64,000 nt of DNA, taken from contig OZ241827.1 of assembly GCA_965202585.1 (NCBI GenBank), positions 23,250,001 through 23,314,000 on the forward strand, in the 5' to 3' direction. Each line of letters begins with the position of its first letter. Positions within the stretch are counted from its first letter, which is position 1. The notes under the pieces were generated by a model. The model was given only the letters and a program-made list of their open reading frames with translations. It searched no databases and had not been told where the DNA came from. Below, piece after piece: positions 16,901-46,910 of this stretch. The translations under genes and the position numbers were made by a program. The stretch is from Thalia democratica. Its lineage: Eukaryota.

Positions 16901-18585
16901 TTTACTGAGAAGTTAAAAAAATGTAACAACATCGGATTTTGAATAGATATTTTGTATATAGTTTTATAAGACTATATCTTATATTTTTTCAACCACTAGA
17001 ACTTTAAAACTTACTGATAACTTAATTAATTGATTAATTTTTAAATATTGATAGCCTATGCTCGATTATAAATATTTATTAATTAAGACTTAAAGCACTT
17101 ATTTGTAATAAAACCATGTTATTTAATTTGTAACTAATAACTTCTGTTATTTTAAAAGGTTACCAAATTCGTTAAGGAGGAAAAAAATGTATGTTATGCT
17201 AGTTAAATCAAAAAGTTATACTTTGTGTTTCAGAAACTAATTATAGAACAATTATTTTTATCAATGTTTTCAAACTTACTTGCTTTAATTTTGTTAGATT
17301 TAATGTTAACTTTAATTGATATTTAAAAGAGTTTTACTTCAAAGATTATTGGCAATAAGCCTTTTAGTTTTTATGATTCTATAAGAAATGCTGTCTACAA
17401 CAATAATTGCTTTCAATTGGTTTGTTTATCTAATATTGTCATTTTACTGTCTATACTTTTAGTATTTTAATCATATATTAAGAAATTTGAGCTACTTAAC
17501 GTTGTAGACTATTTTTATCAGTCCAAAAATAAAACAGTTTTTATTTAAACAACAAAAAATTTAAAGTAATCTTTAACTGATTTAATGTATTCTATTTACT
17601 GTAATTGAATAATAGAAGTTATATCTTAATCAATTTGTCTTTCAGTACAATTTAACAGGTATGCACCAGTTTTATGACATTAAAACAATATCAAACTTAT
17701 AAAAATTATTTTAAAATTTAAAAAGTATTTTTATCAAATCAAGCTCGAAAAATTAAAGTCTAAGTACGGCAAAAAAGTCTTATCAAAGCTAGCAAGTCAA
17801 CATTTTTAAATATCTTGTAATGTTAGGACAGGTTTTTACAAAAAAATGTGAAATAATAATGATAAGTTTTATTTCTATAAAAAAAAAAGTTTGATTAACC
17901 TTTAAATTATAGTGTAAATAAGCTTATTGTAAAATGGTTAATAAAATTGCTGTCAATGAGTTTACTACTGATTACCTGCAAACTAGTAAGAGTTGCAGTT
18001 TTCTTACTCCGGTGGATATTGTCTTGATAAGACCATTCACTAGCGAGGAATAAAACTGAAGGTAGATTATACCAAAACACCGTTAACTAAAAGACATATA
18101 TTAAAAAACGTGATTAATATGTCAGTTCATAAAAACTTCTGCGGTTGTAGTTAACGAGCTATAGTTGCTGAGTTTAAGTAAATAAAAAAAAGGTTTGATG
18201 ATGTCCTTTTGTACTAACTGACTAAAAAAAGGGTTATAAATGAAAGTGTGAATCTACTATCTGTTTCAGCTGCTTAAAAAAAGATTTTAGAAAAACAGAA
18301 ACAATAAAATGTATAGAATTTTTGATAACTCGATGATAATTTAAATCTTTTTTAAGCTCTAAACTAAGCACCTTTAGCATTTTGCATGAGCTTGTTTTTC
18401 GGAAACATTGTTTGTACCTCAATTGAATATTAAATGGTTTAGGTAGTAACTATCGCATATTTATGTTTTTTAAGACTAAAATTTATTTGATTTCAAAACA
18501 GTAAATGTTCAAACATAGTTTTATTTTCTAAAGCTATTGGTATAATTTCAAAAAAAAAACATTAGCTATTATTTATTACCAACAG

Positions 18586-21500
18586 ACAGGGAAGATTTAG
18601 AAGATGTAGATGTTTGGATTAGGTTGAATGATCTGGACAAGTACAACTACTACCAATGGGTCGACGGATCTCCTGTATCTTATACTAAATGGTCTTTCAA
18701 CGAGCCAGATGGCGGAGTTAGTTGATATTTTTGTTTGATTTAAAAAAAAATCTATCTCAGTGATCAGCTAATGCCTTAAGAGCGTTTAACTGTTAAGCAT
18801 TTATACTAGAAACAAAACACTAGTCAACCATTCTTTATAACTGTGAACATAAACACAACAAATAATAAAATGAATATTTGTGTTTTAAATGATTATCTAG
18901 TTTTCTCAAATTTTTAGACTGTTTCTAATAAAATAAATAATAAAAAAATTTTAAGAGTTTATCTATCATAAAACTTTCATAAAAAAACTACTTATAATGC
19001 AATATATTATTTTTCTCAACCTAAACTTATTAAATGGTCAGGATCCGCAGTGCGTGAAATTTATCCGCTTGGAGGGGTACTGGTCGGACAAGAAGTGTAC
19101 CCAGCAGCTGCCCTACATGTGCAAGAAGTCCAAGCAGCTGATGGAGGACACGGGAACTGGTGACTTGCCCGTGGAAGAAGGCTGCGACCCCGGCTGGTCG
19201 GCCTATGGTCGGTTGTTGTTTTGTTTGGTCTTTCTGAACATATAGATAGTATTTTGTTTTAAACTTCCTAAAGATTTTTATTGCCTTAATTGTTATGCTA
19301 CAATCTTATTTTATATAGTTTTTGGTGTACTGAATTTTAAGAAAGTTTAATAACTTCCTATCCGCTATAATCTAGTATTTAGTCGTAAATGTTTATGGGA
19401 CATATCAAACAGAGTCTTCGTGCTACTACGTGAACACCGACGACACCATATACAGGTATGCGAGGGAGATTTGCGCTGAGAACAAAGACGGAGCGTACCT
19501 GGTCAGCATCAATGACGGTTACGAGCAAGCCTTCGTCAACTCGCTTGTTAGTTGAAGTTGTATTTGCGATTTGGTTTCTGCTTATAAGTATTGTTTAACC
19601 TTAAAATTTTAACTACTTTATCCGCTATAAAGAATTAAAGGCTTATATATTTATTGGAAAGCTGTCATACGCTTTTATTATATCGGCGTTTTATTAGTCA
19701 AAAATAAAGGTTACACAATTGTTTTGACAACATATTTTTTTTTACAAAGTATATCATTGAAATTTTCAAATAGACTATTAGCCAAGGTTTTTAATTTCAT
19801 GTAAACGAATAATAATGTAAGAAGTACGTAACAAAAGTTTTTTGTTTTATGTACTTGTTTGTAATTAAAAAACGTGTTGTGTCCAAAAGTTAAAAAAATT
19901 CAGGTGTCCGCAAAACTGCGTCCAGGTCTGAACTACACGGCGTGGATCGGGTTCGCCGGAAGAAATTTAGACGACAACATGGCTGAAATCGTTTATGAAT
20001 GGGAATCAAAGGAGCCGGTAACTTACACAAATTGGAATGTTGGACAGCCCCGTTAGATTTGTTCCATAGTTTGACGGTTGCACCAATTTTTATTATAAAA
20101 AAGTCTAAAACTTGTGGCTCAAAAGTAGAAGTCAAAAGTTAAACAGAATAAACCATTGCGAAAATTTTGGTTATACGTAAATATTTCTTACATTAAACAA
20201 AACATTTATTGTGCGTTTTCAAGAAAAGAAACACTAGGAAAAGAATTTACAGAAGTTTTAGATTTATTAAACATATTTTACTTTTAGCATAGTAATAAAC
20301 TCAAAAATTTCTTAACAATTAGAGTAAAAAAAAACGAACAACTTATTATTTTACTTCTTGAAAATTGCTTTTGTATAAAAAAGGTACGAGTTTGAAGAAT
20401 TTGAGGGCTAATGAATTAATGCTTTCAATATGAATAAAATAAATTTTCAAGCTATTTAAAATAAATTTTACCATACAAATGTTCAACAGAAACGAGGTAC
20501 GAGTGCGCGCTGCCGTTCACGTACAAGGGAGTGACGTACAACGAGTGCACGACCGACGTGCCGTCTCCGGCCAGGCAGAACGAGCCGTGGTGCAGCACCG
20601 ATGCGGAGTACAACGGTTTCTGGATGTACTGCAGCGACAAGCGGGCTGTTGCCTGCACCTACCTCGACCCCATCAACGGTTGGTTTGCTCGTTTGGAAAG
20701 CGTATTTTAAGTTTAATTACCACTTAAACTTGTAGAAATTTAATTGCATGTAAGTTTTAAAAAATTATTAAGATCATAAGTCATGATTTTTAATTATTTG
20801 ACTAAAGAAGTTTAAATGCAATTATTATTATTTTTTTTTACCGCATTAACAATTAATTTTTTTCAATAAGCAAAGATTAAATAAAATATGCATATTTTTT
20901 GACTTATGCTGGTGATTTTTATCAAAGTGTAAGCGCTATTAAATATTTATGTTAAAGAAAACAATAGTTAGGGTTTATAATGTGTTTGTCAAACCACGAA
21001 GCAATGATCTATTTTTTATTATTTTGTTTGGTACGGATACTTTAACTTATAAGATCGATACACTACTAACAGGTAAGTGGAACGTGGACTTTTGTGTGAA
21101 CGACTACCACTTTGTATGCGAGAAACCGAGGGTTGGATACCCGCAACCTTCCTACACCACCCCGGATCCCTCATTGAGTTGCCCGGATGGCTGGCTGAGC
21201 GATTCCACTTCATCCTACTGCTACATGGTGCGATAATGTTCTGAACAATATTTTTTGAATTTTTACTTGCTGTAGAGTTTGAGTAGCTGTTTGTTTAGAA
21301 ATTTCTGTTGCTTTTATTATTGCTTTTAAAGACAGCATCCGTTTGGTGAAGTCAATTTTGTTTATTTCTAATCAATATCATGAGACTTCTAAAAGTTTGA
21401 AAATTTAAATTTAATTATCAAATACTTGGAAATTTATACAAATCTTCAACTACGGCCATTCTGAAATACGTTTTGTATCGACACTAACTGCTCAAGAGTA

Positions 21501-23556
21501 TAAACATTCTATTTTATTTAAAACATCGAAAATAACTTTGTAATATTTCAACTATCAGGTGATGGAGTCTCTGGACGACGCTGACCGGAAGACGTGGCAG
21601 GAAAGCGTGGACTACTGTCGCCACTTGGGGGCGGACCTGGTGTCGGTGCACTCGCAGGAGGAGCAGGCGAGCGTGATACAGGCCGTGCAGCGGGTCACCG
21701 TCAACTCTTTCGTGTACTTCTGGATGGGGCTGAACAACCTGGTCCCCAAAGACGGATACCAGTGGTCCGACGGTCAGTTATTTTTGTGCATTTAAATGGA
21801 ATTCGGGATATTTTGAATATTTTTGAATATTTTATAAATAACCTGATAGAAAAAATACTTATTGGTTAGTATGTACATGGTCAGACTGTTGTTTTAAGGA
21901 TTTAAAAATAATTAGAGCGGTTTTAAAGATTACATAAGTTTTACGTAAGCAGATGCTTATATATACATATATATCATTAGGCTTCATAATCAACAGCCTG
22001 ACGCTGACTTTAAGTTGTTTGTGATAAATTTTTTAAATGAATATAACTTTATAAACTTATAGAGTTTAATAAAGGTTTTTATAAGAATTTATGAAAGATA
22101 TTTTAAAAAGTTTACTATACTTTTTATAGGTTATTACAAAATTTAACTTGTCACAACAATAACTCAAAAACAAATTTTAACTTATGATCATAGCTGCCAC
22201 AAACTAACAAGTTAATTTTTAAATTTTACGGATAAAAAAGTCAAAGATAATTACTTTTGTTTACTAATTTTCGTCATACAACATGTTTTTTGTGGTTTGT
22301 AATTCCAACTTAAAGTAAAAGTTATAGTTTTAGATTATTAAAAATTTAACTTTTTTTTTAGGATCTCCAACATATTACTATAGTTGGGGAGACGGGGAGC
22401 CCAATAACTTTGAAGGAACTGAAAACTGCATTGAAGGACAATTTTACGCAGGCGTTGAAAGGTAAGCTGATTTATAGCAGTTAACTTTTGTTTGTAAAAG
22501 TTACATAAAACTAACTCACATAAAATGAAAATACTGCTTGATAAAAGGATCTTATAAATATTTATTTTTAAATACGAAATACTTTAATGGAAACAATGTG
22601 GATGAACTAATGTTTGTTAAGTTATTCTGTAGGTAGCCAAAAAAAATTCGGTAAAAAAAAGACGTTCATTTTCGACGAACATCTTTGAAAAAATATAGAG
22701 AGAAAATATTTAAAAAAAAGAGCAAAAAAGCCATCCGAATTCGCCCAAACTTTAATAAACAATTTTAAATTATTACAAACATCTACAGTTTATATCATTC
22801 AATGTGATCTTAACAGTTGGAACGACATTGAATGTCAAAGCAAACGAAACTGGATTTGCAAAATAGCAAAGGGCAAGTCACCGTTAGCACCGCCCACGGA
22901 ACCATATAAAAGGGGCGTAACCCCGCGTGCGGCACCGACCAGTCATGGGTAAGTACAACTTCAAACTAACATTTAAAGAAATCAGAGCAAACAAATTTTC
23001 AATTTGAGCACGTATGCTTTTGACCAGTTTTTAAATATGACTAGAAGACTTAATTATTCAAAAATTATCTGAAAATTTTATTAACGAGTTTTTTTTATTA
23101 TAAATTTATTTCTCATAAAAATTGTTTCAAAAAAAAAAAGATAGAGAACAAACAAGAAAAAAACGCGATTTAAACCCACACGTCACACGCAGGTCAGGTA
23201 CCAAACGTCGTACAACCAGGACAAGTGCTACCTGTTTAACGACCAGTCCTCCCGCCAGCTGGTGGCAGTGCACAGCGACGACGAAAGCTTGACGCTGCAG
23301 TCCTGGACCGCAATAAGTTCCGCGTCCAGCTTCTGGATAGGACTGCCAGTATAAAAAAGTTAATACAAACTAAACGAGTCACATACAGAGGGATGGACGT
23401 GGAGCGACAGTTCTCCTTACCAGTACTCGAACTGGGCGAACGGGGAGCCGAACGGCCAGGACGGGGAGGAGTGCGTGGAGATGTACCCGTGGGACGGCAG
23501 CTGGAACGACGTGCCCTGCTACGAAACCAGGGGGTTCGTCTGCAAGAGGCCTAAAG
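18586..23556 (+). CDS. Mannose-receptor-like multi-C-type-lectin gene fragment with nested FN2 domain; 3' part disrupted (possible pseudogene)
   Basis: Exons 18586-18716, 19042-19207, 19413-19546, 19904-20051, 20490-20678, 21073-21227, 21559-21772, 22362-22461, 22817-22948, 23193-23556. Splice phases agree through 22817. Four CTLDs: WIRLND/EPD, WIGF/GQP, WMGLN/EPN/WND, WIGL/EPN/WND. FN2 motif CALPFTYKGVTYNECTT...PWCST...WMYC. Frameshift near 22921 and two in-frame TAA at 23352 and 23361. Confidence 0.85.
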
Positions 23557-23669
23557 GTTTGAAAAAATATATAGATTTTTAAGGTTTGTAGGATTTAAGC
23601 TTTGTGGTTGAGAACTTTATTTTTTGTGATAGAATTAACAAGTTTATAATATATTAGTATGATCTATAC

Positions 23670-23745
23670 TAGGGGTGGGCAACGTAAATAATTGACGGGC
23701 CGGATCCAAAAAAAAAAGTCCTCAGCGGGCCGGAGCATTTCGAAT
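23670..23745. mobile_element. Left end of a hAT (Charlie/Buster-like) MITE, interrupted by a TAGTGATCTACCGGA-family remnant at 23746-23890
   Basis: TAGGGGTGGGCAAC terminus followed by CGGGCCGG motifs. Related ends at 30699, 52894 and 61167. Confidence 0.55.
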
Positions 23746-25013
23746 TAGTGATCTACCGGATTCAGCTGGATTTATTTTTAGATCTGGATCCTAATTTTAC
23801 AATATTATTCTGATCTGGCAAAAAACTAATTTTAGACAAAGATCCGGATCCGAACGTATGCTTATTTGAAAAAGATTTGGATCCGGCCGGGTGCTAATTT
23901 ATCGTGTATTTCAGAATTTTGAATCGATATATTAATTACCAAGGTTCTCAAGTATGAAATTTTGTTTTAATTTTTATTAAGTATACATAACTATATATTT
24001 ATTATAACTCTGGATCGAATTAATACTAATTAGTCTTATAAAAACAATAATTTACTTACTAAAAAATACTCGAGCCTAATATTTCAAGCTAAAACATTAA
24101 AAAATTGTTAATTGTTCGAAAATATATATATTATTCAGAAGTTAACTAACATTACAAAATTAAACTACTACCTTTTAATTTAAACAAACTTATTAAGATT
24201 CATTACACATTTTTGCACGTATAAAAGAAACAAAACAACAAATAATTCTGATATAATAAACAGCTTTACCGTAAAAAGCAAAAAAATAAATTAAAAGATT
24301 TTGATGAAACACTTAAGGTTAATCATATATCACAGTTGTTTAAATCTAGTTGCATGAAGGTTTGGGAAAATCTGCAATTGCACTGAAATACCGATTAGGT
24401 TTGAGATTAGCTTATCCTTGTTAAAGTTAATGGTCGGAAATGTTTGTTTTCAAATGTATGAAGTTTCGAACAAAACAACTAGGTTCATGGTCATATTTTG
24501 AATTTGACAAACTTTGGCTCGTTCAATAATACATAAAATCTATCTAAAAGTCTACTAAAAGCAGCGATATTGTATGCTTGATTTAAATTTTCATATCAAA
24601 ATATTTAAAAAACAGTTAAACCTAGATAAAAAATTACTTTGACTTAAAATTCTAGTACTTTTACTTTCAAAATATCAAACATTAATGATCAACTTATGAA
24701 ACTTAACTAAGTTCTGTACTCTAAAAATAACATTATCAAACAATTCATCTAAAATACTTTTATAAAAGTACTAACATAAAATAACGAAATACTAAAATAA
24801 AAAGAGATTAATTAATACTAAACATGATAACTATAACAATTTAATAGACTTTTAGACTAAGATCAGTTTTTCTATAATGAAATTAGTACTAAACGAAAAA
24901 CTAACATATAAAACTGTCATATTATATATATAATGTAAAGTTTAAAGAGTTTAGGAGGAATAATTACACTAAAAAGAAGTCAATGAGACATTTGTGGATC
25001 ATCAAAGTTTTTA

Positions 25014-28000
25014 ACAAGTTAGGAAAAAGCTAATAAAATTTAGAATATTCACCCTTTTTAGTTGGAAGTTGTCTGGTTTTGCTATAATTGTAAATTTTCC
25101 GTACTTCGTAAAATTATCTTCTACTTCAGGACAAAATGTGATCAGACAGGATTCGGAGGTACAATTATCAGAAAGCTTCTTATACTCAACCTAATAAAAA
25201 AAGAATAGTTAAATTGATTAAATAACTTTAAAACCTACTTGATATTAATAAACCAGTTAGGATTTTACTAAATAGTTATAATATAACAGTTAAAAGTTAG
25301 GAAAAAACTAATAAAATTTAGAGTATTTACCTTGTCTAGTTGGAAGTTGTCTGGTTTTGCTATCATTGTAAATTTTCCGTATTTCATAAAATTTTCTTCT
25401 ACTTCAGGAAAAAATGTGATCAGACAGGATTCGGAGGTAGAATTATCAGAAAGCTTCTTATACTCAACCTAATAAAAAAGAATAGTTAAATTGATTAATT
25501 AATTTTAAAACTACTTCATATTAATAACCCAGTTAGGATTTTACTAATTAGTTATAATATAACAGTTAGAATTAGGAAAAAACTAATAAATTTAGAGTAT
25601 TTACCTTGTCTAGTTGGAAGTTGTCTGGTTTTGCTATCATTGTAAATTTTCCGCATTTCATAAAATTTTCTTCTACTTTAGGACAAAATGTGATCAGACA
25701 AGATTCGGAGGTACAATTATCAGAAAGCTTCTTATATTCAACCTAATAAAAAAGAATAGTTAAATTGATTAATTAATTTTAAAACTACTTCATATTAATA
25801 ACCCAGTTAGGATTTTACTAATTAGTTATAATATAACAGTTAGAATTAGGAAAAAACTAATAAATTTAGAGTATTTACCTTGTCTAGTTGGAAGTTGTCT
25901 GGTTTTGCTATAATTGTAAATTTTCCGTACTTCGTAAAATTATCTTCTACTTCAGGACAAAATGTGATCAGACAGGATTCGGAGGTACAATTATCAGAAA
26001 GCTTCTTATACTCAACCTAATAAAAAAAGAATAGTTAAATTGATTAAATAACTTTAAAACCTACTTGATATTAATAAACCAGTTAGGATTTTACTAAATA
26101 GTTATAATATAACAGTTAAAAGTTAGGAAAAAACTAATAAAATTTAGAGTATTTACCTTGTCTAGTTGGAAGTTGTCTGGTTTTGCTATCATTGTAAATT
26201 TTCCGTATTTCATAAAATTTTCTTCTACTTCAGGAAAAAATGTGATCAGACAGGATTCGGAGGTAGAATTATCAGAAAGCTTCTTATACTCAACCTAATA
26301 AAAAAGAATAGTTAAATTGATTAATTAATTTTAAAACTACTTCATATTAATAACCCAGTTAGGATTTTACTAATTAGTTATAATATAACAGTTAGAATTA
26401 GGAAAAAACTAATAAATTTAGAGTATTTACCTTGTCTAGTTGGAAGTTGTCTGGTTTTGCTATCATTGTAAATTTTCCGTATTTCATAAAATTTTCTTCT
26501 ACTTCAGGAAAAAATGTGATCAGACAGGATTCGGAGGTAGAATTATCAGAAAGCTTCTTATACTCAACCTAATAAAAAAGAATAGTTAAATTGATTAATT
26601 AATTTTAAAACTACTTCATATTAATAACCCAGTTAGGATTTTACTAATTAGTTATAATATAACAGTTAGAATTAGGAAAAAACTAATAAATTTAGAGTAT
26701 TTACCTTGTCTAGTTGGAAGTTGTCTGGTTTTGCTATAATTGTAAATTTTCCGTACTTCGTAAAATTATCTTCTACTTCAGGACAAAATGTGATCAGACA
26801 GGATTCGGAGGTACAATTATCAGAAAGCTTCTTATACTCAACCTAATAAAAAAAGAATAGTTAAATTGATTAAATAACTTTAAAACCTACTTGATATTAA
26901 TAAACCAGTTAGGATTTTACTAAATAGTTATAATATAACAGTTAAAAGTTAGGAAAAAACTAATAAAATTTAGAGTATTTACCTTGTCTAGTTGGAAGTT
27001 GTCTGGTTTTGCTATCATTGTAAATTTTCCGTATTTCATAAAATTTTCTTCTACTTCAGGAAAAAATGTGATCAGACAGGATTCGGAGGTAGAATTATCA
27101 GAAAGCTTCTTATACTCAACCTAATAAAAAAGAATAGTTAAATTGATTAATTAATTTTAAAACTACTTCATATTAATAACCCAGTTAGGATTTTACTAAT
27201 TAGTTATAATATAACAGTTAGAATTAGGAAAAAACTAATAAATTTAGAGTATTTACCTTGTCTAGTTGGAAGTTGTCTGGTTTTGCTATCATTGTAAATT
27301 TTCCGCATTTCATAAAATTTTCTTCTACTTTAGGACAAAATGTGATCAGACAAGATTCGGAGGTACAATTATCAGAAAGCTTCTTATATTCAACCTAATA
27401 AAAAAAAGAATAGTTAAATTGATTAAATAACTTTAAAATCTACTAGATATTAATAACCCAGTTAGGATTTTACTAAATAGTTATAATATAACAGTTAAAA
27501 ATTAGGAAAAAACTAATAAATTTAGAGTATTTACCTTGTCTAGTTGGAAGTTGTCTGGTTTTGCTATCATTGTAAATTTTCCGCATTTCATAAAATTTTC
27601 TTCTACTTTAGGAAAAAATGTGTTCAGACAGGATTCGAAGGTACAGTTATCAGAAAGCTTCTTATACTCAACCTAATAAAAAAAGAATAGTTAAATTGAT
27701 TAAATAACTTTAAAATCTACTTGATATTAATAAACTAGTTAGGATTTTACTAAATAGCTGTAATAACAGTTAAAAATTAAGAAAAACTAATAAATTTAGA
27801 GTATTTACCTTGTCTAGTTGGAAGTTGTCTGGTTTTGCTATCATTGTAAATTTTCCGTACTTCGTAAAATTTTCTTCTACTTTAGGACAAAATGTGATCA
27901 AACAGGATTCGGAGGTACAATTATCAGAAAGCTTCTTATACTCAACCTAATAAAAAAAGAATAGTTAAATTGATTAAATAACTTTAAAACCTACTTGATA

Positions 28001-29345
28001 TTAATAAACCAGTTAGGATTTTACTAAATAGTTATAATATAACAGCTAAAAGTTAGGAAAAAACTAATAAAATTTAGAGTATTTACCTTGTCTAGTTGGA
28101 AGTTGTCTGGTTTTGCTATCATTGTAAATTTTCCGTATTTCATAAAATTTTCTTCTACTTCAGGAAAAGATGTGATCAGACAGGATTCGGAGGTACAATT
28201 ATCAGAAAGCTTCTTATACTCAACCTAATAAAAAAGAATAGTTAAATTGATTAAATAACTTTAAAATCTACTTGATATTAATAAACCAGTTAGGTTTTAC
28301 TAAATAGTTATAATATAACAATTAAAAGTTAGGAAAAAGCAAATAAAATTTAGAATATTCACCTTGTCTAGTTGAAAGCTGTCTGGTTTTGCTATTATTG
28401 TGAATTTTCCGTATTTCGTAAAATTATTTTCTACTTTAGGAAAAAATGTGATCAGACAGGATTCGGAGGTACAATTATCAGAAAGCTTCTTATACTCAAC
28501 CTAATAAAAAAGAATCGTTAAATTGATTAAATAACTTTAAAATCTTTATGATATTAACAAACCAGTTAGGATTTTACTAAATAGTTATAATATAACAGTA
28601 AAAAGTTAGGAAAAAACTAATAAATTTAGAGTATTTACCTTGTCTAGTTGGAAGTTGTCTGGTTTTGCTATCATTGTAAATTTTCCGCATTTCATAAAAT
28701 TTTCTTCTACTTTAGGAAAAAATGTGATCAGACAGGATTCGGAGGTACAGTTATCAGAAAGCTTCTTATACTCAACCTAATAAAAAAGAATAGTTAAATT
28801 GATTAAATAACTTTAAAATCTACTTGATATTAATAAACCAGTTAGGTTTTACTAAATAGTTATAATATAACAATTAAAAGTTAGGAAAAAGCAAATAAAA
28901 TTTAGAATATTCACCTTGTCTAGTTGAAAGCTGTCTGGTTTTGCTATTATTGTGAATTTTCCGTTTTTCACAAAATTATCTTCTACTTTAGGAAAAAATG
29001 TGAACAGACAAGATTCGAAGGTACATTTATCAGAAAGCTTCTTATATTCAATCAATAAAAAAAAGAATAGTTAAATTGATTAAATAACTTTAAAATCCAC
29101 ATGATATTAATAAACCAGTTAGGACTTTACTAAATAGCTGTAATAGCAGTTAAAAATTAAAAAAAAAACTAATAAAATTCAGTGTATTTACCTTGTCTAA
29201 TTGGAAGTTGTCTGGTTTTGCTATCATTGTAAATTTTCCGTATTTCGTAAAATTATCTTCTACTTTAGGAAAAAATGTGATCAAAAAGGATTCGGATGTA
29301 CATTTTTCAGAAACCTTCTCAGACTTAACCTAATTAAAAATAACA
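25014..29345. repeat. Tandem array of 16 units of 274-278 bp (exon plus intron) with higher-order structure
   Basis: The anchor AGTTG(G/A)AAG occurs at 25060, 25338, 25612, 25886, 26164, 26438, 26712, 26990, 27264, 27542, 27816, 28094, 28370, 28646, 28922 and 29199 (variant AATTGGAAG). Variant order is A-B-C, A-B-B, A-B-C with an 826-bp period. Confidence 0.95.
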
Positions 29346-29525
29346 ATTAAGTTAAAATAAAAAATCTTTAAAGTCATTATAGTTTTTCTATTGATCTTAC
29401 TACAACCTAAATCAATTTATTATGCAGATCACTATATTTCAAGTATGACAAATAAAGTGAAGAAAACTCACTTGTTTTTGACCCAAATTTATCAGGATAA
29501 GCAACACCCATAAGCATTTTTTCAT
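25053..29525 (-). CDS. Putative secreted repeat glycoprotein: signal-peptide exon plus 16 tandem 46-codon exons; 3' end unresolved
   Basis: Exon 1 29525-29472 encodes MKKCLWVLLILINLGQKQ and ends at a GTGAGT donor in phase 0. Then 138-nt phase-0 exons at 29329-29192, 29052-28915 (acceptor AG lost), 28776-28639, 28500-28363, 28224-28087, 27946-27809, 27672-27535, 27394-27257, 27120-26983, 26842-26705, 26568-26431, 26294-26157, 26016-25879, 25742-25605, 25468-25331, 25190-25053. All are stop-free. In 14 copies the acceptor is a T-rich tract ending ATTAG (TTTTTAATTAG at 29329); donors are GTAAAT or GTGAAT. Consensus VEYKKLSDNCTSESCLITFFPEVEENFMKYGKFTMIAKPDNFQLDK. Confidence 0.78.
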
Positions 29526-32500
29526 GTTTATCAAATTTTATTAGAACACAAATACTATAAATACAAATATTGTTTAACAAAACTAATTTATCAAGTTCTT
29601 AAATCTAAGTTTTAAAAGCTTACTAAAGGCTTGCTTAATTTAAACTTTTAATATTCTAAATTGACTGAAAATAATCAATGAAGAATTGAAAATAATTATA
29701 AATTGAGTAACTTATCAAGATAATTAGTCACTAACATTTTTTCAAACAGTTAAGCATGTTTTTATAACTAAGTTATTAATAATCAATATAGTACCAATCA
29801 ATCATTATGTTGTCAAATTATATAATTATGATTATCAATAAACTTAAATAATTAATTAGTTCAAATACGAGACGAAATAAAAATTGTACGTAGAAAAAAT
29901 ACAAAGTATACTATTAATTGTTTAAATCCTTTAAAGTTTCGACTAGTACAAGGTTCTACAGCCTTGTAAAAGACGCAGGTCATTTTTCTTAGTAAAAAGC
30001 TGTTTGCAGGCGGTTTTTAATAAAAAAGGTTTTACGTAGGCCGAATTCTTTTTTTTTTTCGTTTGTTGTAATCAAAATAAAAATACTACTTTAGAAAAAC
30101 AGTGTTATAAAATAAGGTTTACGAAATAATTAAAGTTTAAAAAGTTTTACGACAGTTTAAAGTTTAATTACGCGGTTCGAGTTCTCAAAAAGATGTTTAA
30201 AGGGCCACAACTCAAAAAGTAATATATATTTAAAAAAAACTGCGTATGTACGTTTACTTAATAAATATATTACAGTTAAATATTAAGAAATAAATATTAA
30301 AAGAAAAACTTAATAATCACTAAAAAATCCTATATTTAAAACTTTTTTTAGCCATATCTCAAAAAGTGTTTAAAATTTTGCAAACAAAATTTAATATCAA
30401 TTAGACCTATGTAAGGATTTTTTTACTTTTTTTTAATACATATAACCTATTGAGTTGTTACCCTTTCAATAATTTATTAAGAATTGGAAATGTCGGAATT
30501 TAAATTGTCCGAATTTGAATAGTCGTGCACCCTAAAACACAAGTAATTAGTAACTAGATATTTTACCTAATTGTAAGTTTGAAAAAAGCTTTTTACTGTG
30601 CTCAAAAAGGTAATTTATTTACTAAAAAGTACCTCGCTAACCGCCGATCTATGCTTTGCGAGCCGATTTTTACCAAGGTCTGCATGTTGCCAACCCCTGT
30701 ACGACTAGCTCTTTTATATAAAAGTTTTAACATAATTAGCAGTTTTTGTTTTATCTACCAAATTTAAAGCTTACACTTTTAACAATCTTGTATTTACTAC
30801 TCGGTATTTATAAATATTTAAGTTAGTTTATTTATAGAAAACATAACTCGTTGTAATTGAATTTCAAAAAACGTATTTTTATTATTTATTTTGTGGTACT
30901 TAAATTTATTTTTTTATAACGTAAACATTTTAATTTCAGTATACTTAAACTCAACTAAAAAACGAAACTTGGTTTATAAGATTTTTACATAAAATTTTTC
31001 CTAATATATAACCTCGGCCATTTTAAATTGTTGTAATCAATTAATAAAGATTAAAATAGTTTAACTTTAAGTTTAAGGATTCTTTTTTATCATTTTAAAC
31101 TATCAAATATTTTACAAATTTTGAATTTTATACATTTACTTTAGACTTAAGCGTTTAACTTTAAATGTATACACAATGTAAAATGACACAAAAGTTAGGT
31201 TGAACTTTTAGTATATAAATTGTTTGTTGAATGAAAAAGCTCAAATATTTGGTCCTAGGACCTGGTGTACGAAAAAACCTTTCGGTTATCGAGACATACA
31301 CCAGGGTACAATTTAAAGTCATGTCCAGGACAAAATTTTTATATTATTTGTATATTATATTAAAAATTATACTAAATTTTTTATTAGTTCAAAAATTGGC
31401 AACAGTACTGAACACAGTACTAACTACTAACATTACTATAAAATTAAATCAATTTGTTTATTCAGTTTTTTTGATAGAAATTGTACCAGAAAGAGATATT
31501 AAACCTAAAGCCCAGTCTGATTTGCATAACTACTTAGTCAGCAAATTTAATCAGACCTTTATATTTTTTTATTCATAGCCTTATTCCCAAACACCTTACC
31601 AAAACATATTAAAAATTTATCAAAAAAAAAAAAACTAAAAATAAAACAAAAAAATGTTTTTTGCTGAATCATCAAATAAGAGTAACTATTGTTGTCACGA
31701 CTGAGCTTTAAGTTTGAAAGCATCAGAAAGTAACTCACACAAATGAAATACTATTCGGTAAAAAGCAACTCTTTAGTAACAAATAGAAACAGATTAGAAA
31801 CATTTTAAGATTTTATACAATCTGAGCCGGACCAATGGCATTAGAACTTAATTGATATGCTCAATAATGAATGACTGTTTAGGGTATAAACAAGTATTAA
31901 TGTACTCATGATAATGTACGTCCTGAGCAAGACGTTAAAAGGTATCCGTGGTGTGCGACTCGATTACCGAAAGGTTTTTTTGTGCACCAGGTCTTAAGAC
32001 TATATACTTTGGGCATACTTTTGTCGTTCATAAGACATATTGAAGTAATATTTCTATCAAAATTACGAAAAAAAGTTAACTGTAATAAGTTTTGCATTTG
32101 CTTCTAAATTCCTTTAGAGAAAACTAGAACTAAGTATCATAACAAAATAGAACAAACAAAAAAAAAAAAAACGCTTAAATGAACAGCTAGAATTAGTTTT
32201 GGCAACTATGGTTTCCCTCGTTTATTTAAATTTTATTTTTATATTTAAAGTTTTTATTATAATATCCTTCAGTTGAACAAAGGAAAGGACCTCCCAAAGT
32301 GGCCCAGGTGTTTTACTTTATGGTTCTTTAATCCACAGTTTACTAGTATAATAAGCTAGTTATTTAAGACTATATGTTTTATATACTATTAATTTTTGTT
32401 AGAATATGTTTCTTTTAGAATATTTGTTTAGATGGTCAGAACTCAGAAGCTTTGTTTTTATTTTTAAAGTACAATAAATACAATCTAAAACTACAGTACA

Positions 32501-33752
32501 CTTAAATTAGCTGATAAAGATTTATTTTAGTTTTACATTTCTACAAATATTAAAAACTAACTTAAATTTAACAAATTTTCAAAACTTACCATAATTTATG
32601 TTTTTTACTTTTAGGACTGTAACTGTATTCAAAAAATAAATGCATTTAATACAATAGCTTAAATTGATTTCATTAATTTTTTCTTGTTCTTCCATAAAAT
32701 AAAAAACCTTAGCTAGTCCAATACATGTAGAGTGAATTAATTATTAGATTAAAAAAAAATGTTTCATAAAATTATATTGTCTTATATAGAACACAAAGAG
32801 TGTAATAAGAGTTATATCTTATTTAGTTTTTATACTTTTTAAATGTTTTGCCAGTTATGATTAGTATTGATAGTTACTCTAAAACTTTTAAGTTTTACAT
32901 AGGAAAAGTGTATAAAATTTCATTAACTTCATTTTAGTAACATATTTGGAGCTGAATAATTTTTTCTAAAAATTTTATTCACGACTCTTTTAGATTAAGT
33001 TTAAAATAATTACATTAATTTAACAAATTTTCTGGCAACATATATGTAATATAAAATTTAAGTATTTATGTTATACATGTTTTTATTTAACACTTAACAA
33101 GCAAATCTAATGAAAACTTAAAAAGTTAAAAGTTATTATTGGTTGAAATAAAGTAATAGTCTTTTTTCTATAAAATTCACTATAGACTCTAACTATTACA
33201 AAGTTAAACATTAAGAAATACTTTAAACTGTATGGTTAAAAAAATATATATGTAAAATGAAGGATAATATAAAACATTTTATTCTATCAATTGATTAATT
33301 AACTTTAGAGTTAATAAACAACACTTAAGACTGAATTAACACAAATTAAAAAAAAGTTGATTGTAGAAATAAAGAAATTTTTTACAAGTCTATTCCTTAT
33401 TATGATATTTATAGTATTTTAAAAATATTTTGTTGCTATATAATTTTATTAATTATAATTATATTTTTAGATTCAAGGTTTGCTTTGAACACATAATTCT
33501 CCAAATACTTAAATCGTCTTTGATTTTGATAATAATTGTTTTTGATATTCTGAACTGGTTTTTAGCTTTTTTCAAACCTGTTATAGTTGTGTGTACAGTG
33601 AAATCTAGCATAGCTTAGTTTTTAAAAAACCATAAGTTAAAATAAGATTTTAAGATAACAAAAAAAAGAACTTTACTTAAGTTAATATTTATTAATTATG
33701 CCGTAAGTTTTAGCTTTTTACACTGGTTTATTGGCAAACCAATTATCAAAAT

Positions 33753-34141
33753 CAGGGTTGCCACTTTACCTGGAATCCTGGAAAAACCTGGAATTTGACA
33801 GTTTAGGCAAAAATAACCTGAAATTTAAGAAATTCTGAAAAAAACTTGAAAAACCTGGAACTTTGAACAAATACCTGGAATTTTTAAGAATTTTAACTTG
33901 TTCAGTTGTAAAATTTCGGTTTGACACGAAAAATTTATAATATAGATAAAACAAATTTGTCATCATCAAAATTTATTTTAATAAAAAAATACATTTTAAG
34001 TAGCTTTACAGTATCTTTTCAATCTTTTTATACTATTGAACACAGTTTTTACCTTAAATTTAACTTTACACTTAAAATAGACCCAAAAATGTGTACTTTT
34101 AAAAACCTGGAAAAAATTTGAAAAAATGACTGGCAACCCTG
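33753..34141. mobile_element. CAGGGTTGCCA-family MITE with apparent 6-bp TSD
   Basis: TIR CAGGGTTGCCA / TGGCAACCCTG. CAAAAT on both flanks (33747-33752, 34142-34147). Confidence 0.75.
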
Positions 34142-34929
34142 CAAAATACTTTAAGAAAAAAATCTACTACTGTAAGAATTGAGTATACTGTAAAAAAAAA
34201 CATATGTATGTTAAAGTCATGCAAAAATATTATTTTATAATAGACAACATGGGCGGCTGTTTCTCGAAATTTTTGTGCGGGTACCGTATTTTTTGCTCAA
34301 TAATAAAGTTTTTCTTGTAGTATTTTTGTGTTAAAACAGTGTAGAAATTAAGTAAAGGTCTGCTATTATGTTCAAGCATTTGTTTATTGTACTAATCAAA
34401 ATTTTCTGCCAAAGAGAGATTTGTAAAAGTAATGTTTTAGTATCTTCAACTGTACAGAAATTATGAAAAGTAACTTACTCTGCAAAAGTTTTGCCTCCGA
34501 AATAAGAAATAACAACTAAAACTAGAACAAATGTTTTTTATTTTAATGTTAATTATTAGAAACTTTAAAATATTGCTATTTTTTGATAAGTTTGTTTTTC
34601 TTGTCCTTTCAAAAATTTTTTTAAAGTTTGAATTTTACTTCAGCTACTTTTAAATATCTTATGTTAATAAAATCATTTATTGTAAGTAAAGTTGAATATA
34701 GAAGTTGAAATGGTACTTAAAAAAGTTATGATTTTTGCACTAAACTTTAGTGAAAAAACTAGTTGCTAAAAAAACTTAAAATTTCAGCTAGATATCGTTT
34801 TGCAGAAAATGTTGAAATGTCACTACAGAAAAGTCTTGGTCAAGTAGTTGAAATGATATGATGTTTAGTGAACTATAAGAATCAAATTTTGGAAAACTAA
34901 ATTTCAATATCTAACAGTGTCATAAAAAT

Positions 34930-35593
34930 GGGTAGCTGTCTAAATTGGACGAAGGGACAAAATTGCACAAAATTGCACGAGGATACTTTTTCACGAAGAT
35001 AACTTTGCACGAAGGGTCACTTTTGCGTGAAGACAATTTTGCACGAGCAGACGATTTTGCACGGAGACAGACAATTTTGCGTGGGTTGTTTTTTTATTTT
35101 ATTTTAATTTTTTTTTTTTTTTACTATTACTCTTACATTTACCCCTCCTAACCTTTACCCATTGTAGGTAAGTTTATTTAGTTTTAATTAGTTTTATATT
35201 TTAATTTATAATTATCTTTTATTTTTTGATTTTTTTTTGACTATCATTGTTACCCCTAGCCCTTACCCTCGGTCGGTAGCTTTTTGAATTTTTTTTGTTT
35301 AATTTTTTTTTTATTGTAATTTTTATTAATTATGTTTTTATTTTTATTCTTATTATCACTATTACCCATGAACCTTACGCTCGGTCAATAATTTTTTTTA
35401 AATATATAAAATTAATAATATTATTATTCTTTTTCTTAATTTTATTATTTTTTCTTTATTTTTTTACTCACATTCAAAAATGTAACTCGTGCGAAATTGA
35501 CTCTTTGTGCAAAATCGTCTTCGTGCAATTTTGTTCTCGTGCAACTTAGTCCCCTCGTGCATTTTTGTCTTCGTGCAATTTAGACCCGTTCCT
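34930..35593. mobile_element. MULE-like non-autonomous element (GGGTAGCTGTC/TTGCAC family)
   Basis: Termini GGGTAGCTGTC and GACCCGTTCCT with inverted TTGCAC arrays. Flanks CATAAAAAT / CGTAAAATT are a 7/9 match. Confidence 0.7.
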
Positions 35594-36236
35594 CGTAAAA
35601 TTATCATATTGAAAGACTTGCAGAATATGCTTTAATACGACCTAATTTTTTATTTTTTTACAATTTAGTTTACTGTAAACAAAAAAACGACGCACAAAAT
35701 AATTGGTCCAAGGACTTGGTGCATGAAGAACTTTTCAAGTTGCACACCTCATAGATAATTTTCAACATCTTGTCCAGGACTTTTATTAAACAAAATAAAT
35801 AAAAGTTTAAATAACAGATTTATAAGCAACTAAATGTAGTTAAACTATATTAAGTAAAATTGAACACTTTTGAAGTAAAATCTTATTTTGTAGTTCAAAA
35901 ACAACATATAATCATTATTTGTTACTTATGTGAGCATTTTTATTTGTAAACTTTAACGAAACTTAGTAAAAAAAATTATTATAAAAATAGGCTCTTTTAA
36001 AACATCAGTTTATTATGACATCACTGTTAAACTTTATGTTTAGTTCTCTTTCATCTGACAGCTAGTAGTGCATAAGCATGTGGTGAAACTTTCTCAATCT
36101 TTACACTTTATAATATCAGCATCCATTCTTTAAAATTTCAGCGAAAAAGCACCACCAACTCTTTTAGCGTGTATTTCAGATTAAACAAAGTTTTTAAAGA
36201 ACAATCTAATTTTTTCATCTTTATCTTGTTTTTCAG

Positions 36237-36254
36237 GGGCTGCACAGGCTCTAG
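36237..36254 (+). other. Candidate 18-nt micro-exon upstream of the calpain-like ORF (probably 5' UTR)
   Basis: Long pyrimidine tract ...TTGTTTTTCAG|GGGCTGCACAGGCTCTAG|GTAAGT. The next acceptor (TTATTTTTCAG, 36862) is 3 nt before the ATG at 36866. Confidence 0.5.
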
Positions 36255-36865
36255 GTAAGTAATTAAAACTCAACCTTGAAAGACAACATGGGTTCCACGT
36301 TAAAAATTAAAATTAATAAAACGACCATTTTAGTAAATTAAAAGTGATTAAAGTATATTACTTTTAGTAGTTTATATTACTATTTTATGAAATATTGTTT
36401 TGCACTTAAATCTTCTTAAGATATTTCTGTAGGTCTTATTACTTTTTATAAGCACAACTTTGTTTGTAGTTATTTGTTTTGTTGTTCTTAGTAGTTTGTA
36501 AACAAATATTTGACTATTTTGTTTCTTTAAATAAAAAACCTACACAAATATTATATATTCGTCAGCCATAAAATCGTTTCAAAGTAGGTTTTTGACGTAA
36601 ATGAAATACTACAAAATTGTAAATGATACCATAAAGTAAAATTTCTCAACCAACAGTACCGTTTATAAACTTTTACAGTATAATAGTTTTATTTTATGTA
36701 GTTCAATTCAGTACAAAATTATACTTTTTGATATATTGATATTAGAAGAAAAAGGTTAGTGAAATTAGTTTGAAATGTTATAATTGTAAATTTTGCTTTT
36801 TATGTTAAACTAGATAAAAAAATATTAGCTAATTTATAAAACCTAAAACACTTATTTTTCAGAAA

Positions 36866-38140
36866 ATGTTTAAATTGTTTAAAGTTAAATTACTAACTCT
36901 TCTCATAGCATGTGCTTTTTTGACGTCAAGTGGCCGTAGCTACGACGACACTTTTGTTTCCCGCGAACAAGAAAACAACTCTGATTACTTCATCACCGAA
37001 AAAAGCTTCAAGCAAAGCAAAGTTTTAGGAAACTGCTGCCTCGTAGCCGGCATGGCCACGTTGCCGGGCAACGCTGAGCTGCGCCACCAAGTGTTGTCGC
37101 CAAACTTCACAAAGCCACAAGAACGGGAATTCTTCCAATTCAACATTTACCGGATGGGAAAGCTCCATCGAGCGGAAGTCGACGTTAAAAGTTTGCCGAC
37201 GGCGGAAGACGGAAGCGAGCTGGTTTACTCGAGCAGCGCATACGGCGACTTGGTCGGACCCTCGCTCGAGAAAGCCCTGGTCGACGTGCACTTCGGGGGC
37301 GAGTACGATTCGTCCGAGGAGGCCCACCCCTCCACCGTCCTGACCAGCTTCACAAACGGCTACTACGAAGAGTTTCCAATCGTCTCGATTTTAGGCTTAA
37401 AAATAAGGGACGTGGTCCAACACGGGTTAAAAAGCAGCTCTCCGATGTTGGTCCAGTTTGCAAACAGGCCGGGGTTGTATGAATGGCATTGTTACACTTT
37501 GCTTGACATTAAAAACGACACTGCACAGCTGTACAACCCGCACGGCAGCTACCTTCAAATGACTGAAAGCGACTTCTACGAAAACTTGGAATCACTCGAC
37601 ATTGCTTATTACAAAAACAAAATATTCAGAATGCCGCAGCTTGAAGCTTCTTTTGAGTTCAACGAAACTTGGCCTGCGCTGCGACAGCACGAGAAAATTC
37701 GATTTGTGGAATACGACCTGGTGGTTGACGAAAACGACACGCAGTTGCTGTTTAACTTACTCGCCAAGCGTGATTCTCGTCCGGGCGTTTCTCCGAAGCT
37801 TTTCATCTTTGCCGTCGACAATGAAAACGGTGAAAAAAGCCTCCGAATGGTGCGAAATTCGGTGGTGCGTGGCTACAGAAAATCCAACGAAGAGATTTAC
37901 AGTTACACCGACTCTTTGAGAGCGACACTGAATAGCGGCAAGTACAAGGTGGCGGTCGTGCTGTCGACGTGCTGCACGTTTCGCAACAGCGCCTCTTGCG
38001 AGGAGTACTTGCGAAACGGAGGAGGCGAGTTTTTGTTCCGCCTCGCCGCTTCGAAGCGCTGTTCGGTCAGCAAGACTCAGGATAAAGACACCGAAATGGT
38101 CGAAAAAGTGCTCACCGACTATGAAGTGGGAAAATATTGA
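36866..38140 (+). CDS. Calpain-family (peptidase C2) cysteine protease with N-terminal signal peptide, single coding exon
   Basis: 424-aa ORF. QSKVLGNC57 resembles calpain QGxLGDCW; also SLEKALV..FGGEYD, WH208CYTL and LYN224PHG, giving the Cys-His-Asn triad. The C-terminal ~170 aa is beta-rich like calpain domain III. Hydrophobic N-terminus KLLTLLIACAFLTSSG. AATAAA near 38256. Confidence 0.85.
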   Translation: MFKLFKVKLLTLLIACAFLTSSGRSYDDTFVSREQENNSDYFITEKSFKQSKVLGNCCLVAGMATLPGNAELRHQVLSPNFTKPQEREFFQFNIYRMGKLHRAEVDVKSLPTAEDGSELVYSSSAYGDLVGPSLEKALVDVHFGGEYDSSEEAHPSTVLTSFTNGYYEEFPIVSILGLKIRDVVQHGLKSSSPMLVQFANRPGLYEWHCYTLLDIKNDTAQLYNPHGSYLQMTESDFYENLESLDIAYYKNKIFRMPQLEASFEFNETWPALRQHEKIRFVEYDLVVDENDTQLLFNLLAKRDSRPGVSPKLFIFAVDNENGEKSLRMVRNSVVRGYRKSNEEIYSYTDSLRATLNSGKYKVAVVLSTCCTFRNSASCEEYLRNGGGEFLFRLAASKRCSVSKTQDKDTEMVEKVLTDYEVGKY

Positions 38141-39108: not shown

Positions 39109-41839
39109 ACAACTAAAAAACCTGCAGTCATCAACCAACAGTTTATCATGCTTATACAAAGCTTTATTTAAACTGTGTAACTGTACTATAAACAGTACTA
39201 CTCGGTGTATATAAAATCTTCTTTAAGTATTTCTGGTCTTTTTACTTAAATAAAATTAACACATTATTTGTTTTGCCTGCACTGCAACAAGGGAAAATAC
39301 GAGCTAGTTAATTAACGGTTTTAAAAAAATAAGTACATAATGAACTAATTATTTGTAGTTATTTTTTTAACTGTCGGAATCTGTTTAGTAAGTAAATTTT
39401 TGATAATACCTGAAAACTTTAAAACTTTGAAACACCAAACTGTTCTTTCTTTTATTTAATATTAGCGAAAAGTTATAAATTTTTTAGTTTATTTTGTCGA
39501 AGTTGTAGAACAAAACTTATTATTAAGTACTAAAAAACTAAATGTTATAAAATTAAAAAATGTTTTGTTTAGTTAAATGCTAACAAAAAATTAGCAATAG
39601 AAAAACTTTAAAAACTATCTGTTTAAAGAACCTAGTTATTAAGAACTATTTTAAATAAAAGTTTTACCTTGTATTCAGTTAAATTGTTATTAAATTCTTT
39701 ATATAACTATAAATTTTGTATTTTAAAAAAATAATCTAAATGGTTGAAAACCCCGTGTAAAATGAAACTTTAAGTTTATTTTTTTACTTTCGTTTGACAT
39801 TTTATCGATTTAGTGATACTTACATTTAATTAGACTTTTGTAAAACAATTATCTAAGTTAAGTTTTGTCAGTGATCAAGTTTAAATAGCAAAACTGTGTT
39901 TAAACAGTTGTGATTTACAGCTGATTTGAATTTAAAAAATAACAAATTATTAAATAAATAATGAATAAATTTATTTTTAAACTAATTAAATATTAGGTAC
40001 TTAATAGTTTCGTTCTAATTTTAACTTTTAGTTTTCAATTAGCTAATTAAGTCTCACATAGTCTTACATTACTTTTACTTTGACGTAACTATTATAAAGT
40101 AAACTATTAGTCTTATAATATATTGTTTACTGTAGTTATTTAAAAAAGGTTATTTAGAAAAAAAAAACTATATTAAACAGATAATACATAGTTAAGAATT
40201 TATATTAACATCTCAAACAAAATAAACACTAGTGCGAAAAATAGTTGATGCAAAAGTTGAGATATAGAACTATTTTGTTAATACATTTTTTAAACTTATG
40301 AATTAAAACATAATTTTACGATCTCGATATAACATTATAAGCTGATGTCAATAGCTTAAACTTAAAAGATCTATAAAATTAAAATAAATCTAATATCACA
40401 TAATTACTACTATATCACTTTATAAAAAAGTAATTTTTATTGTTTTATTACTTATTAAAACTCCTCGTCAAAACGACAAAAATAGATATAAGTAATACAA
40501 TTTAATCAAACAGATGAAAAAAATTTTAGCATAAGTATTTTGTTTAAACCTATTTCAATTATTTAATTGTCAAAAATTAATAACCGATAACTTAATAATT
40601 AAGTAACTTACTTTTAAGTTACTAAAAACTGTACTACAATCTATATCTAAAAAATAAATTATTATACCTAATTACAACTGTTTTTAAAGACCAGACTTAA
40701 GACATATTAATGTTTTAAATTAAATTGTTCTACAGCCTTTTAGGCTATATATGATTCCTAAAACGTTAAATCCTTTGATTAGTAAAATATTTTTAGGTCT
40801 GCAAAACTTAACTTATTATTAAAAAAAATATTCTTTTGAAAACTATTACTTATTTTTTAGTACATATTTTTATACAGTAGGTATTATTATTTAGTTTTGT
40901 TTAGGAAAATAACAGCTCTAAAAACTTACTTAAAAATTGTAAACCTTGTTTATATACAAAAATACTAGTTGTCTTTTAATTATTTCTTTTCATAGATTAT
41001 TCAACAATCTTTAACTCACTCCGACTCTTTTTATCTAGTACTTTGTTGTAAATAAGTTATAAACCACTTAGACTTTAAAAGTAGTAAATTTCTCAATTTT
41101 CAAAATAACGACTAATTAAACATAACAAATAGTAAACATATTATTTCTAAATATATCTTTAAACTTTGAAATGTCATTTGTGCTTTCTAGTTTTTATATA
41201 ATTGCGAAATAAAACTTAGTTTTGTCAAGTACTATAATAAATGAAATTTTACAACTAAATTACGTTGTAAAGGTTGTAAAAATGAAACTTTGTTTGTTAA
41301 AACAAAAAAATTGATTCGTGTCCATAAAATTGACAGTTTACTAAGTCTTGTGGAGTTTTTACTTTCTCAATTTTTGTTATTTACTCAATCAAATATTGTT
41401 TAACATAAAAGGTTTTGATAACAGTAACCAAGTACAAATTCATGTAGCAATTGTTTTAGATTAGTTGTATGAATTACTTCTTAAAAGCTATATACTCCTT
41501 TTAAAAAAATTAAGCATTATCTATTAAAATAAAAAAAAAGATATATTTAAAAATTGATCTTTTGCAGTAAAGTCCTTTACTTTCAAAATAGTTATTAAAA
41601 GTTTTGTATTGTTGGTTCACAACAGTCAGATAATATTAACAGCTGAACATTAACTGATGTTTTTATTAAAAGTATGAGTTTTACATATCAAATTTTACCA
41701 GTATACTTTACAGTTTTTAGGGAATTTTCACAAGTTTAGATAAATATTCACATTACTCTTTTAACTTCTTTAAAACAACAACTTGAAAACAATCAATCAA
41801 CCAAACTAAACTCAATAAACTTTAGATACTTGACACACA

Positions 41840-46644: not shown

Positions 46645-46910
46645 ATATTATATAGCCAGATGTTGGTATTGTTTAGTTCTATAAAACACATTTCTATGAA
46701 TGTTGGTTAGAAGCTGCTTTTTCAGTCAGTATAAATAATAGTCGATGATTAAAATAAATTTTATTGTATGTGATGCAAGTTAACAGATTGTTTCTCTGCT
46801 TCTCGTACAAAAGCTCTTGTCAGACACTTCATTACTAAATTGCTCCATATGAATACATTCATTTGAAAAATTTCAAACAAAAAATTTTTACAACACCCGT
46901 CGGTTTAAAG

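Follow-up and report, generated by a model that had tools for sequence, protein, structure and literature searches.

The stretch analysed here, called the window throughout, is 64,000 nucleotides long and covers positions 23,250,001 to 23,314,000 of contig OZ241827.1 in the Thalia democratica assembly GCA_965202585.1. The DNA is eukaryotic: its exons have 45-58% GC and lie among very AT-rich introns. Its part of interest encodes a C-type lectin domain (CTLD) that is interrupted by a complete fibronectin type II domain (FN2), an arrangement written CTLD[FN2] below. The nested domain is one unit of a tandem-CTLD array, in which at least one CTLD precedes it and another follows.

Exons and domains of the nested unit

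On the plus strand, four exons bordered by AG and GT, designated A to D, splice into a single open frame of 208 codons. RNA evidence comes from three marine metatranscriptome runs (X1-X3; two samples, one study), whose environmental contigs are 90-99% identical to the window. CTLD matches were scored with Pfam and with a home-made local hidden Markov model (HMM), built from six Pfam-confirmed canonical CTLDs of protein P0113. The features are as follows.

19042..19207, plus strand: exon that completes the preceding CTLD and, after a linker, supplies the first Cys (CDPGW) of the nested CTLD's long-form N-terminal hairpin (RNA joints 18716>19042 and 19207>19413; translation)
19413..19546, plus strand: exon A, the N-terminal third of the CTLD, with the SSCYY hairpin Cys, the helix-1 Cys (EICAE), and LVSIND (AG/GT borders; Pfam Lectin_C 5-33, E 0.016; joint 19546>19904 in X1-X3)
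19904..20051, plus strand: exon B, with the WIGF core, PVTYTNW, GQP, and the first base of the Q that completes the EPN-equivalent "QPQ"; ends in phase 1 (AG/GT borders; local CTLD HMM; joint 20051>20490 in X1 and X3)
20490..20678, plus strand: exon C, the FN2 plus the next CTLD strand, 189 nt, phase 1-1 (splice sites; Pfam; RNA joints; homologous exons in paralogs and other assemblies)
20504..20632, plus strand: the FN2 proper, with four Cys and six conserved aromatic positions (PF00040 1-42/42, 44 bits; matches to the FN2 modules of MMP-9, fibronectin, MMP-2, and PDC-109)
20633..20678, plus strand: SDKRAVACTYLDPIN, the CTLD beta-3 strand with the canonical Cys C2, 15 residues, fused to the FN2 inside exon C (with exon D, Pfam Lectin_C 77-107/107, E 0.0058; local HMM)
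21073..21227, plus strand: exon D, with KWNV at the place of WND, Cys C3 and C4 (FVCEK), a PRVGY..TTPDP linker that is conserved, and the first part of the following CTLD (CPDGW..SYCY) (HMM and Pfam; joints 20678>21073 and 21227>21559)

The spliced frame runs TNWNVGQP-Q-[FN2]-SDKRAVAC, then KWNVDFC, then FVCEK. An earlier note on this DNA, made from the letters alone, had read the same frame with matching phase-1 junctions, and that reading is exact. Introns B/C and C/D are each in phase 1, and exon C is a symmetric 1-1 exon. On the C-terminal side, the FN2-to-CTLD junction is independent of splicing, because both parts lie in exon C. The N-terminal junction (GQP/Q-TRYEC) is the sole CTLD/FN2 junction that depends on a splice.

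The RNA contigs are confined to exons, and their depth is zero in every intron bin of the three runs. The joints that they define are 18716>19042, 19207>19413, 19546>19904, 20051>20490, 20678>21073, 21227>21559, 21772>22362, 22459>22817, and 22948>23193. Those at 19546>19904, 20051>20490, 20678>21073, and 21227>21559 all have GT..AG ends. Two joints were set 1-2 bases off by the aligner owing to single-letter differences and hence were listed without such ends; the joint 19207>19413 was aligned at 19205/19412 owing to a T>C variant. The introns proposed earlier on either side of exon C, 20051-20490 and 20678-21073, agree with the RNA joints to within one base.

In run X2, the 3' end of exon B appears as a loose end reading GGACAGCCCC. 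Record 13 of run X3 (461 nt) carries exons B and C contiguously, plus 60 and 65 end letters that match the A/B and C/D joints; therefore, one contig spans A-B-C-D. No extra exon between B and C is present in the RNA contigs of the three runs. The earlier note had raised the prospect of transcripts that complete the CTLD before the FN2. None was found among these contigs; rather, the RNA joins GQP directly to the FN2 exon. A DNA run labelled as another organism (X6) covers the locus too, at 90-99% identity.

Two trivial origins of the open frames were considered. Chance frames were rejected on the Pfam E-value, the RNA evidence, and conservation. Contamination was rejected as well, as exon GC and intron style match those of the neighbouring exons.

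The FN2 is complete. Its Pfam match (PF00040, E 2.2e-11, 44 bits against a cut-off of 22.2) takes in the whole model, positions 1-42/42, and residues 5-47 of the 62 in the exon C translation. A full-length match above the gathering score, together with the four-Cys pattern, places it in the FN2 family. It starts one residue past the region where QPQ replaces EPN, that is, between the QP and the next CTLD cysteine, where the earlier note had put a four-Cys FN2. The pocket aromatics (PF, xY, xxY, WC, Y, and W..C) align with those of the MMP-9, FN1, MMP-2, and PDC-109 modules, and no homolog has lost them. Among solved structures, the best sequence matches are the FN2 modules of MMP-2 and MMP-9. 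From these conserved aromatic residues, we infer that the FN2 may bind a collagen-like or matrix ligand.

The flanks, for their part, carry the landmarks of a CTLD: the long-form pair CDPGW..SSCYY, C1 in EICAE, WIGF, PVTYTNW, C2 in AVACTY, KWNV, C3 in DFCVND, and C4 in FVCEK. Cysteines C1-C4 and the C0/C0' pair stand in the right order and are invariant in the paralogs and the ortholog. The WIGL-type core and the conserved Trp residues (WIGF, PVTYTNW, and KWNV) align to the canonical CTLD HMM. On both counts, the flanks fit the CTLD family.

In sequence, the flanks read as one domain when the FN2 is taken away. The native sequence matches the local CTLD HMM in two fragments, of 17.4 and 6.4 bits. 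Deletion of 47 FN2 residues in silico yields one uninterrupted match of 35.1 bits across positions 18-126/127, and the QPQ-to-Cys loop then has the canonical length, give or take one residue. The Pfam Lectin_C pieces, one in exon A and one in the spliced post-FN2 peptide, each fall below the cut-off alone, and they bracket an insertion point between model positions ~76 and 77, right behind the EPN-equivalent. The split CTLD that the earlier note expected is seen in these sub-threshold Lectin_C matches, which begin before the FN2 and end beyond it. Its placement of the insert in the sugar-binding loop stands too, the FN2 lying just past the EPN-equivalent of what becomes one CTLD once the FN2 is removed.

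The Ca2+/sugar ligands are gone in the window. QPQ stands in place of EPN, AVA-C leaves no Glu before C2, and WNV, as noted earlier, takes the place of WND. Among homologs, these positions vary: the EPN-equivalent reads QPQ, QPA, SPD, or EPD, and the WND-equivalent reads WNV, WNS, or WGI. The strict signature of a C-type lectin (EPN/QPD, Glu before C2, and WND) is absent. The nested domain is a CTLD, but its sequence predicts that it is no Ca2+-dependent lectin.

The nesting is conserved. In the same genome, exon C has a second copy ~110 kb away, 100% identical in DNA, and diverged homologs at C6 (48% identical) and at C4 and C287 (43%). Exon D is 63-65% identical in the paralogs. All genomic homologs of exons B and D (C2 twice, C6, C4, and C287) hold an FN2 exon in between; no FN2-less version of this CTLD occurs among them. 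Intron positions and phases are identical in all homologs checked. An exon joining the FN2 to the CTLD strand is also found in two other public assemblies, as P0103 (a Logan contig) and P0151 (ENA ERZ22157276). The 12.3-kb locus around P0151, L028, has 39% GC and is clearly from another species. Its gene order, LCCL - CTLD - CTLD[FN2] - CTLD, is the same as here, and its FN2 exon too lies between phase-1 introns. Across paralogs and orthologs, which are about 40-65% identical, ten cysteines and the WIG and W anchors are invariant. The earlier note had suggested a search for paralogs or orthologs; the same nesting, intron positions, and phases turn up in two older paralogs and in another species' assembly.

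Two side observations were made. L028 8400-12300, on the downstream side of the CTLD exons of the ortholog, contains a long run of Lys/Glu/Arg-rich sequence, open in several frames, that looks like a repeat or mobile-element insertion. At G000:C9:30,810,805-30,814,113, on the minus strand (loci L006/L007), two FN2s in tandem share an open frame, with MAM-like exons on either side (GTCDFE..DFDW, by eye); they belong to another mosaic gene with FN2 modules.

The second copy and the status of the window copy

The nested unit lies within a block that occurs twice on C2.

18183..23627, no strand assigned: block shared with an inverted second copy at G000:C2:23,383,641-23,394,539 (blastn; the 30-mers of RNA loose ends occur only in the second copy)

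Across this block, the two copies are 83-92% identical in introns and 91-100% identical in exons. The whole block present in inverted orientation is larger, at least 20 kb, matching window 18183-38140 to G000:C2:23,366,000-23,394,539 (minus strand), ~110 kb apart; its non-coding parts are ~83-92% identical, with large indels. It contains part of the CTLD gene, a tandem array of 46-codon exons, and a calpain-like gene.

Beyond 18586 on the 5' side and 23556 on the 3' side, the RNA contigs continue with sequence that the window does not contain. That sequence occurs once in the genome, at C2:23,394,646 and C2:23,383,039, that is, in the second copy. No CTLD N-terminal exon was found in the window upstream of 18586; the match to the second copy breaks off inside the intron, 107 nt 3' of the exon concerned. 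Also missing from the window copy are 5.3 kb containing CTLD exons and, on the 3' side, the trefoil exon; a 45-nt in-frame deletion removes LTWPQSNDYCRGQGG, including the helix-1 Cys of a later CTLD. At window 23193-23344 and 23345-23387, the 5.3-kb deletion leaves no more than 43 nt, with stops, to separate the N-half of one CTLD from the C-half of another. The window copy's end near 23193-23387 looks broken.

The full-length expressed gene is the copy ~110 kb from the window copy. It lies in a run of exons that extends over G000:C2:23,383,000-23,406,800 on the minus strand (loci L023-L026). Downstream of the CTLD array, and joined to its last CTLD in the RNA contigs, is a trefoil/P-type domain (E 1.6e-11). 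Upstream on the same strand, and perhaps of the same gene, are exons for more CTLDs, an F5/8 type C domain (a weak match), a kringle (E 2.4e-14), and an LCCL domain (E 7.5e-12). Neither a ricin-like domain nor a transmembrane segment was seen in the exons of the full copy examined, the ends of the gene not being fixed.

Is the window copy a working gene? We lean slightly towards the view that it is not, and that it is either an inverted duplicate, truncated and in part damaged, or an uncollapsed haplotype with deletions, of the gene at C2:23.38-23.41 Mb, the nested domain itself being real. The missing outer exons that the RNA places only in the second copy, the homology that ends within an intron, the absent 5.3-kb block, and the CTLD Cys lost with the 45-nt deletion all favour this view. 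The pattern of change between the two C2 copies argues the other way. They differ at 27 synonymous and 6 non-synonymous sites in 411 codons (synonymous divergence, dS, 0.11; ratio of non-synonymous to synonymous divergence, dN/dS, 0.054); therefore, the window copy shows no pseudogene-like drift and has not been drifting neutrally since the split. In addition, 11/11 shared exons are open.

As to what the two copies are, they may be uncollapsed haplotypes of a very polymorphic species, one with deletions, rather than a true duplication. The RNA variants form a mosaic of window-type and second-copy-type letters, as expected from recombining alleles. The C4/C287 pair is 87.8% identical, the same level of divergence as that of the C2 copies (86%). 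Against haplotypes, both copies lie inverted within one 108-Mb contig, which is unusual for a haplotig but possible after scaffolding. Exons A and C are DNA-identical in the two copies, exon B has synonymous differences only, and exon D differs by one residue. Because exons A-D are nearly identical in both copies, the choice between duplicate and haplotype leaves the architecture unaffected.

Elsewhere in the window are two unrelated features. At 41828-43485 (plus strand), long intron-free frames resemble a Ser/Thr protein kinase (HRDIKLEN and DFG, by eye) and are followed by a 168-codon open frame; GC there is 58%, high for the window. At 44174-44447, 46419-46678, and other places, on both strands, are low-complexity open frames rich in "HFCT/RGHFC", probably a dispersed repeat family.

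A CTLD as the probable pedestal of an FN2

We judge it quite probable, on sequence grounds, that this is a genuine domain-in-domain module: a long-form CTLD, devoid of Ca2+/sugar ligands, that carries a complete FN2 in the loop leading from QPQ to beta-3. Sugar binding in a lectin takes place at the apex of the long-loop region, and this is where the FN2 would be inserted. The CTLD would no longer act as a lectin while keeping everything needed for its fold, and would serve as a rigid scaffold, or pedestal, that holds the FN2 by both ends. The aromatic pocket of the FN2, possibly with the adjacent CTLD surface, would then bind a collagen-like, proline-rich, or other matrix or mucus ligand. The whole would be part of an extracellular mosaic protein in a marine animal. 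The most economical account, in our view, is that the CTLD is a rigid pedestal on which the FN2 binding site stands, the two possibly forming a composite surface.

Several points weigh against this account. The RNA consists of environmental contigs rather than transcripts of a defined specimen, and its outer parts continue into exons that the second copy alone possesses. The window copy is damaged, with 5' and 3' exons missing and deletions of 45 nt and 5.3 kb. The folding of the two CTLD halves around the FN2 is a prediction from sequence. A last point touches novelty only: the architecture may already have been annotated automatically elsewhere, as protein searches are blind to long gene models.

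One alternative makes the CTLD a relic, its fold destroyed by the FN2 insertion and its flanks reduced to linkers around a free-standing FN2. The loss of the Ca2+/sugar ligands suits such a relic, as do the flanking exons, which singly score under the Pfam cut-off. We nevertheless find it very improbable. The six CTLD cysteines, WIG, the W of PVxYxxW, and the W of the WND-equivalent are invariant at about 40-65% identity, and paired cysteines are not expected to persist in relic linkers. Removal of the FN2 in silico restores one CTLD with a canonical loop, and the dN/dS of 0.054 likewise speaks against decay.

It is very unlikely that exon C is an optional cassette, skipped in frame (as its 189 nt and 1-1 phase would permit) so that the FN2 is switched in and out and the nested form is only one isoform, given that skipping would also drop the beta-3 strand and Cys C2 and leave C3 unpaired, that no 20051>21073 (B>D) joint is among the joints listed, with three joints unlisted, and that the B>C and C>D joints occur in all three RNA runs, one of them as a loose end.

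Relatives, novelty, and meaning

For the pedestal account, the nearest comparison is with the mannose-receptor family (MRC1, MRC2/Endo180, PLA2R1, and LY75). These proteins have an N-terminal ricin-type Cys-rich domain, 8-10 CTLDs, a transmembrane helix, and an endocytic tail, and their FN2 is a separate domain, N-terminal to CTLD1. Like the protein described here, they combine one FN2 with tandem CTLDs in an extracellular setting. In the receptors, however, the FN2 sits between the ricin-like domain and CTLD1, whereas here it sits inside a CTLD, with at least one CTLD ahead of it. Other differences are the trefoil after the array, the LCCL, kringle, and discoidin exons upstream, and the ricin-like domain and transmembrane tail, which were not seen here. 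An FN2 inside a CTLD, and not ahead of CTLD1, excludes the protein from the mannose-receptor family.

A second comparison is with the gelatinases MMP-2 and MMP-9, whose catalytic domain is interrupted by three FN2 repeats that confer gelatin binding. In them, as here, the FN2 is an inserted module. The gelatinase host is a metalloprotease that holds three tandem FN2s and keeps its own active site, whereas here one FN2 replaces the binding site of the CTLD. Secreted proteins with CTLDs and FN2s in tandem, such as P0113, also unite both domain types; in P0113, each CTLD is complete, with EPN and WND, before the FN2, and the domains stand in series rather than nested.

In Endo180, the FN2 and CTL1 form a rigid unit with a collagen trench that spans both domains, and Tyr193, Arg206, and Asp208 are critical for collagen (PMC4635314). 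The doubly tethered FN2-CTLD described here could act like that FN2-CTL1 unit. The pedestal mechanism is plausible because FN2 inserts function in MMP-2 and MMP-9 and because FN2-CTL1 is rigid in Endo180. A bolder version, which we offer tentatively and regard as doubtful, would make the chimera a single rigid composite binding module with the FN2 pocket at the former sugar site. On that reading, tunicates would have arrived independently at a counterpart of the collagen trench that FN2 and CTL1 form in Endo180 and the mannose receptor. The chimera would also define a family confined to its lineage, made up of strongly expressed, secreted proteins of the matrix or mucus net, and its FN2 would be the first foreign folded domain known from the CTLD long-loop region.

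No described or named protein with an FN2 nested in a CTLD was found in 1.84 billion representative proteins, a 5.8-billion-protein word index, JGI metagenome contigs, the ESM Atlas, or full-text papers, the protein searches covering the best 150 matches or a narrow length band, so that long automatic tunicate gene models could hold one. The earlier note had allowed that databases might show the architecture to be common already; what they hold is unnamed exon-level open frames from two other assemblies. As a protein query, the exon C open frame gave no match; P0103 as query returned P0103 only, and an alignment query returned P0103 and P0151 only. Matches in the representative library are mostly multi-FN2 proteins. 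Of the candidates there that reached into the CTLD tail, nine lack Lectin_C and were rejected on that ground, and P0113 has the ordinary order, with the CTLD followed by the FN2. The 13 loci from the JGI metagenome contigs all encode FN2 proteins of the usual kind, none with a nested CTLD, and the ESM Atlas search gave plain FN2 clusters only.

The CTLD is a much-studied binding scaffold, and its long-loop region is known to vary, being its most variable and ligand-facing part. In the literature searched, no paper was found that describes another family's domain, complete and folding independently, at the sugar-binding apex of a CTLD. The CTLD[FN2] architecture is real, conserved, transcribed, and moderately surprising; it is new in arrangement and built from known domain types. 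As a speculation, the depth of the RNA contigs and the array context suggest a secreted matrix, tunic, or mucus-associated protein, contig depth being an unreliable guide to expression.

Should the chimera adopt the fold that its sequence suggests, a CTLD can display a whole module at this site, which would be of relevance to protein engineering. CTLD[FN2] is also a natural experiment on the cooperation of FN2 and CTLD surfaces, which is non-covalent in Endo180 and the mannose receptor. Lastly, the extracellular proteome of pelagic tunicates, of which little is known, gains a conserved protein family that is abundant in the marine metatranscriptomes used here.

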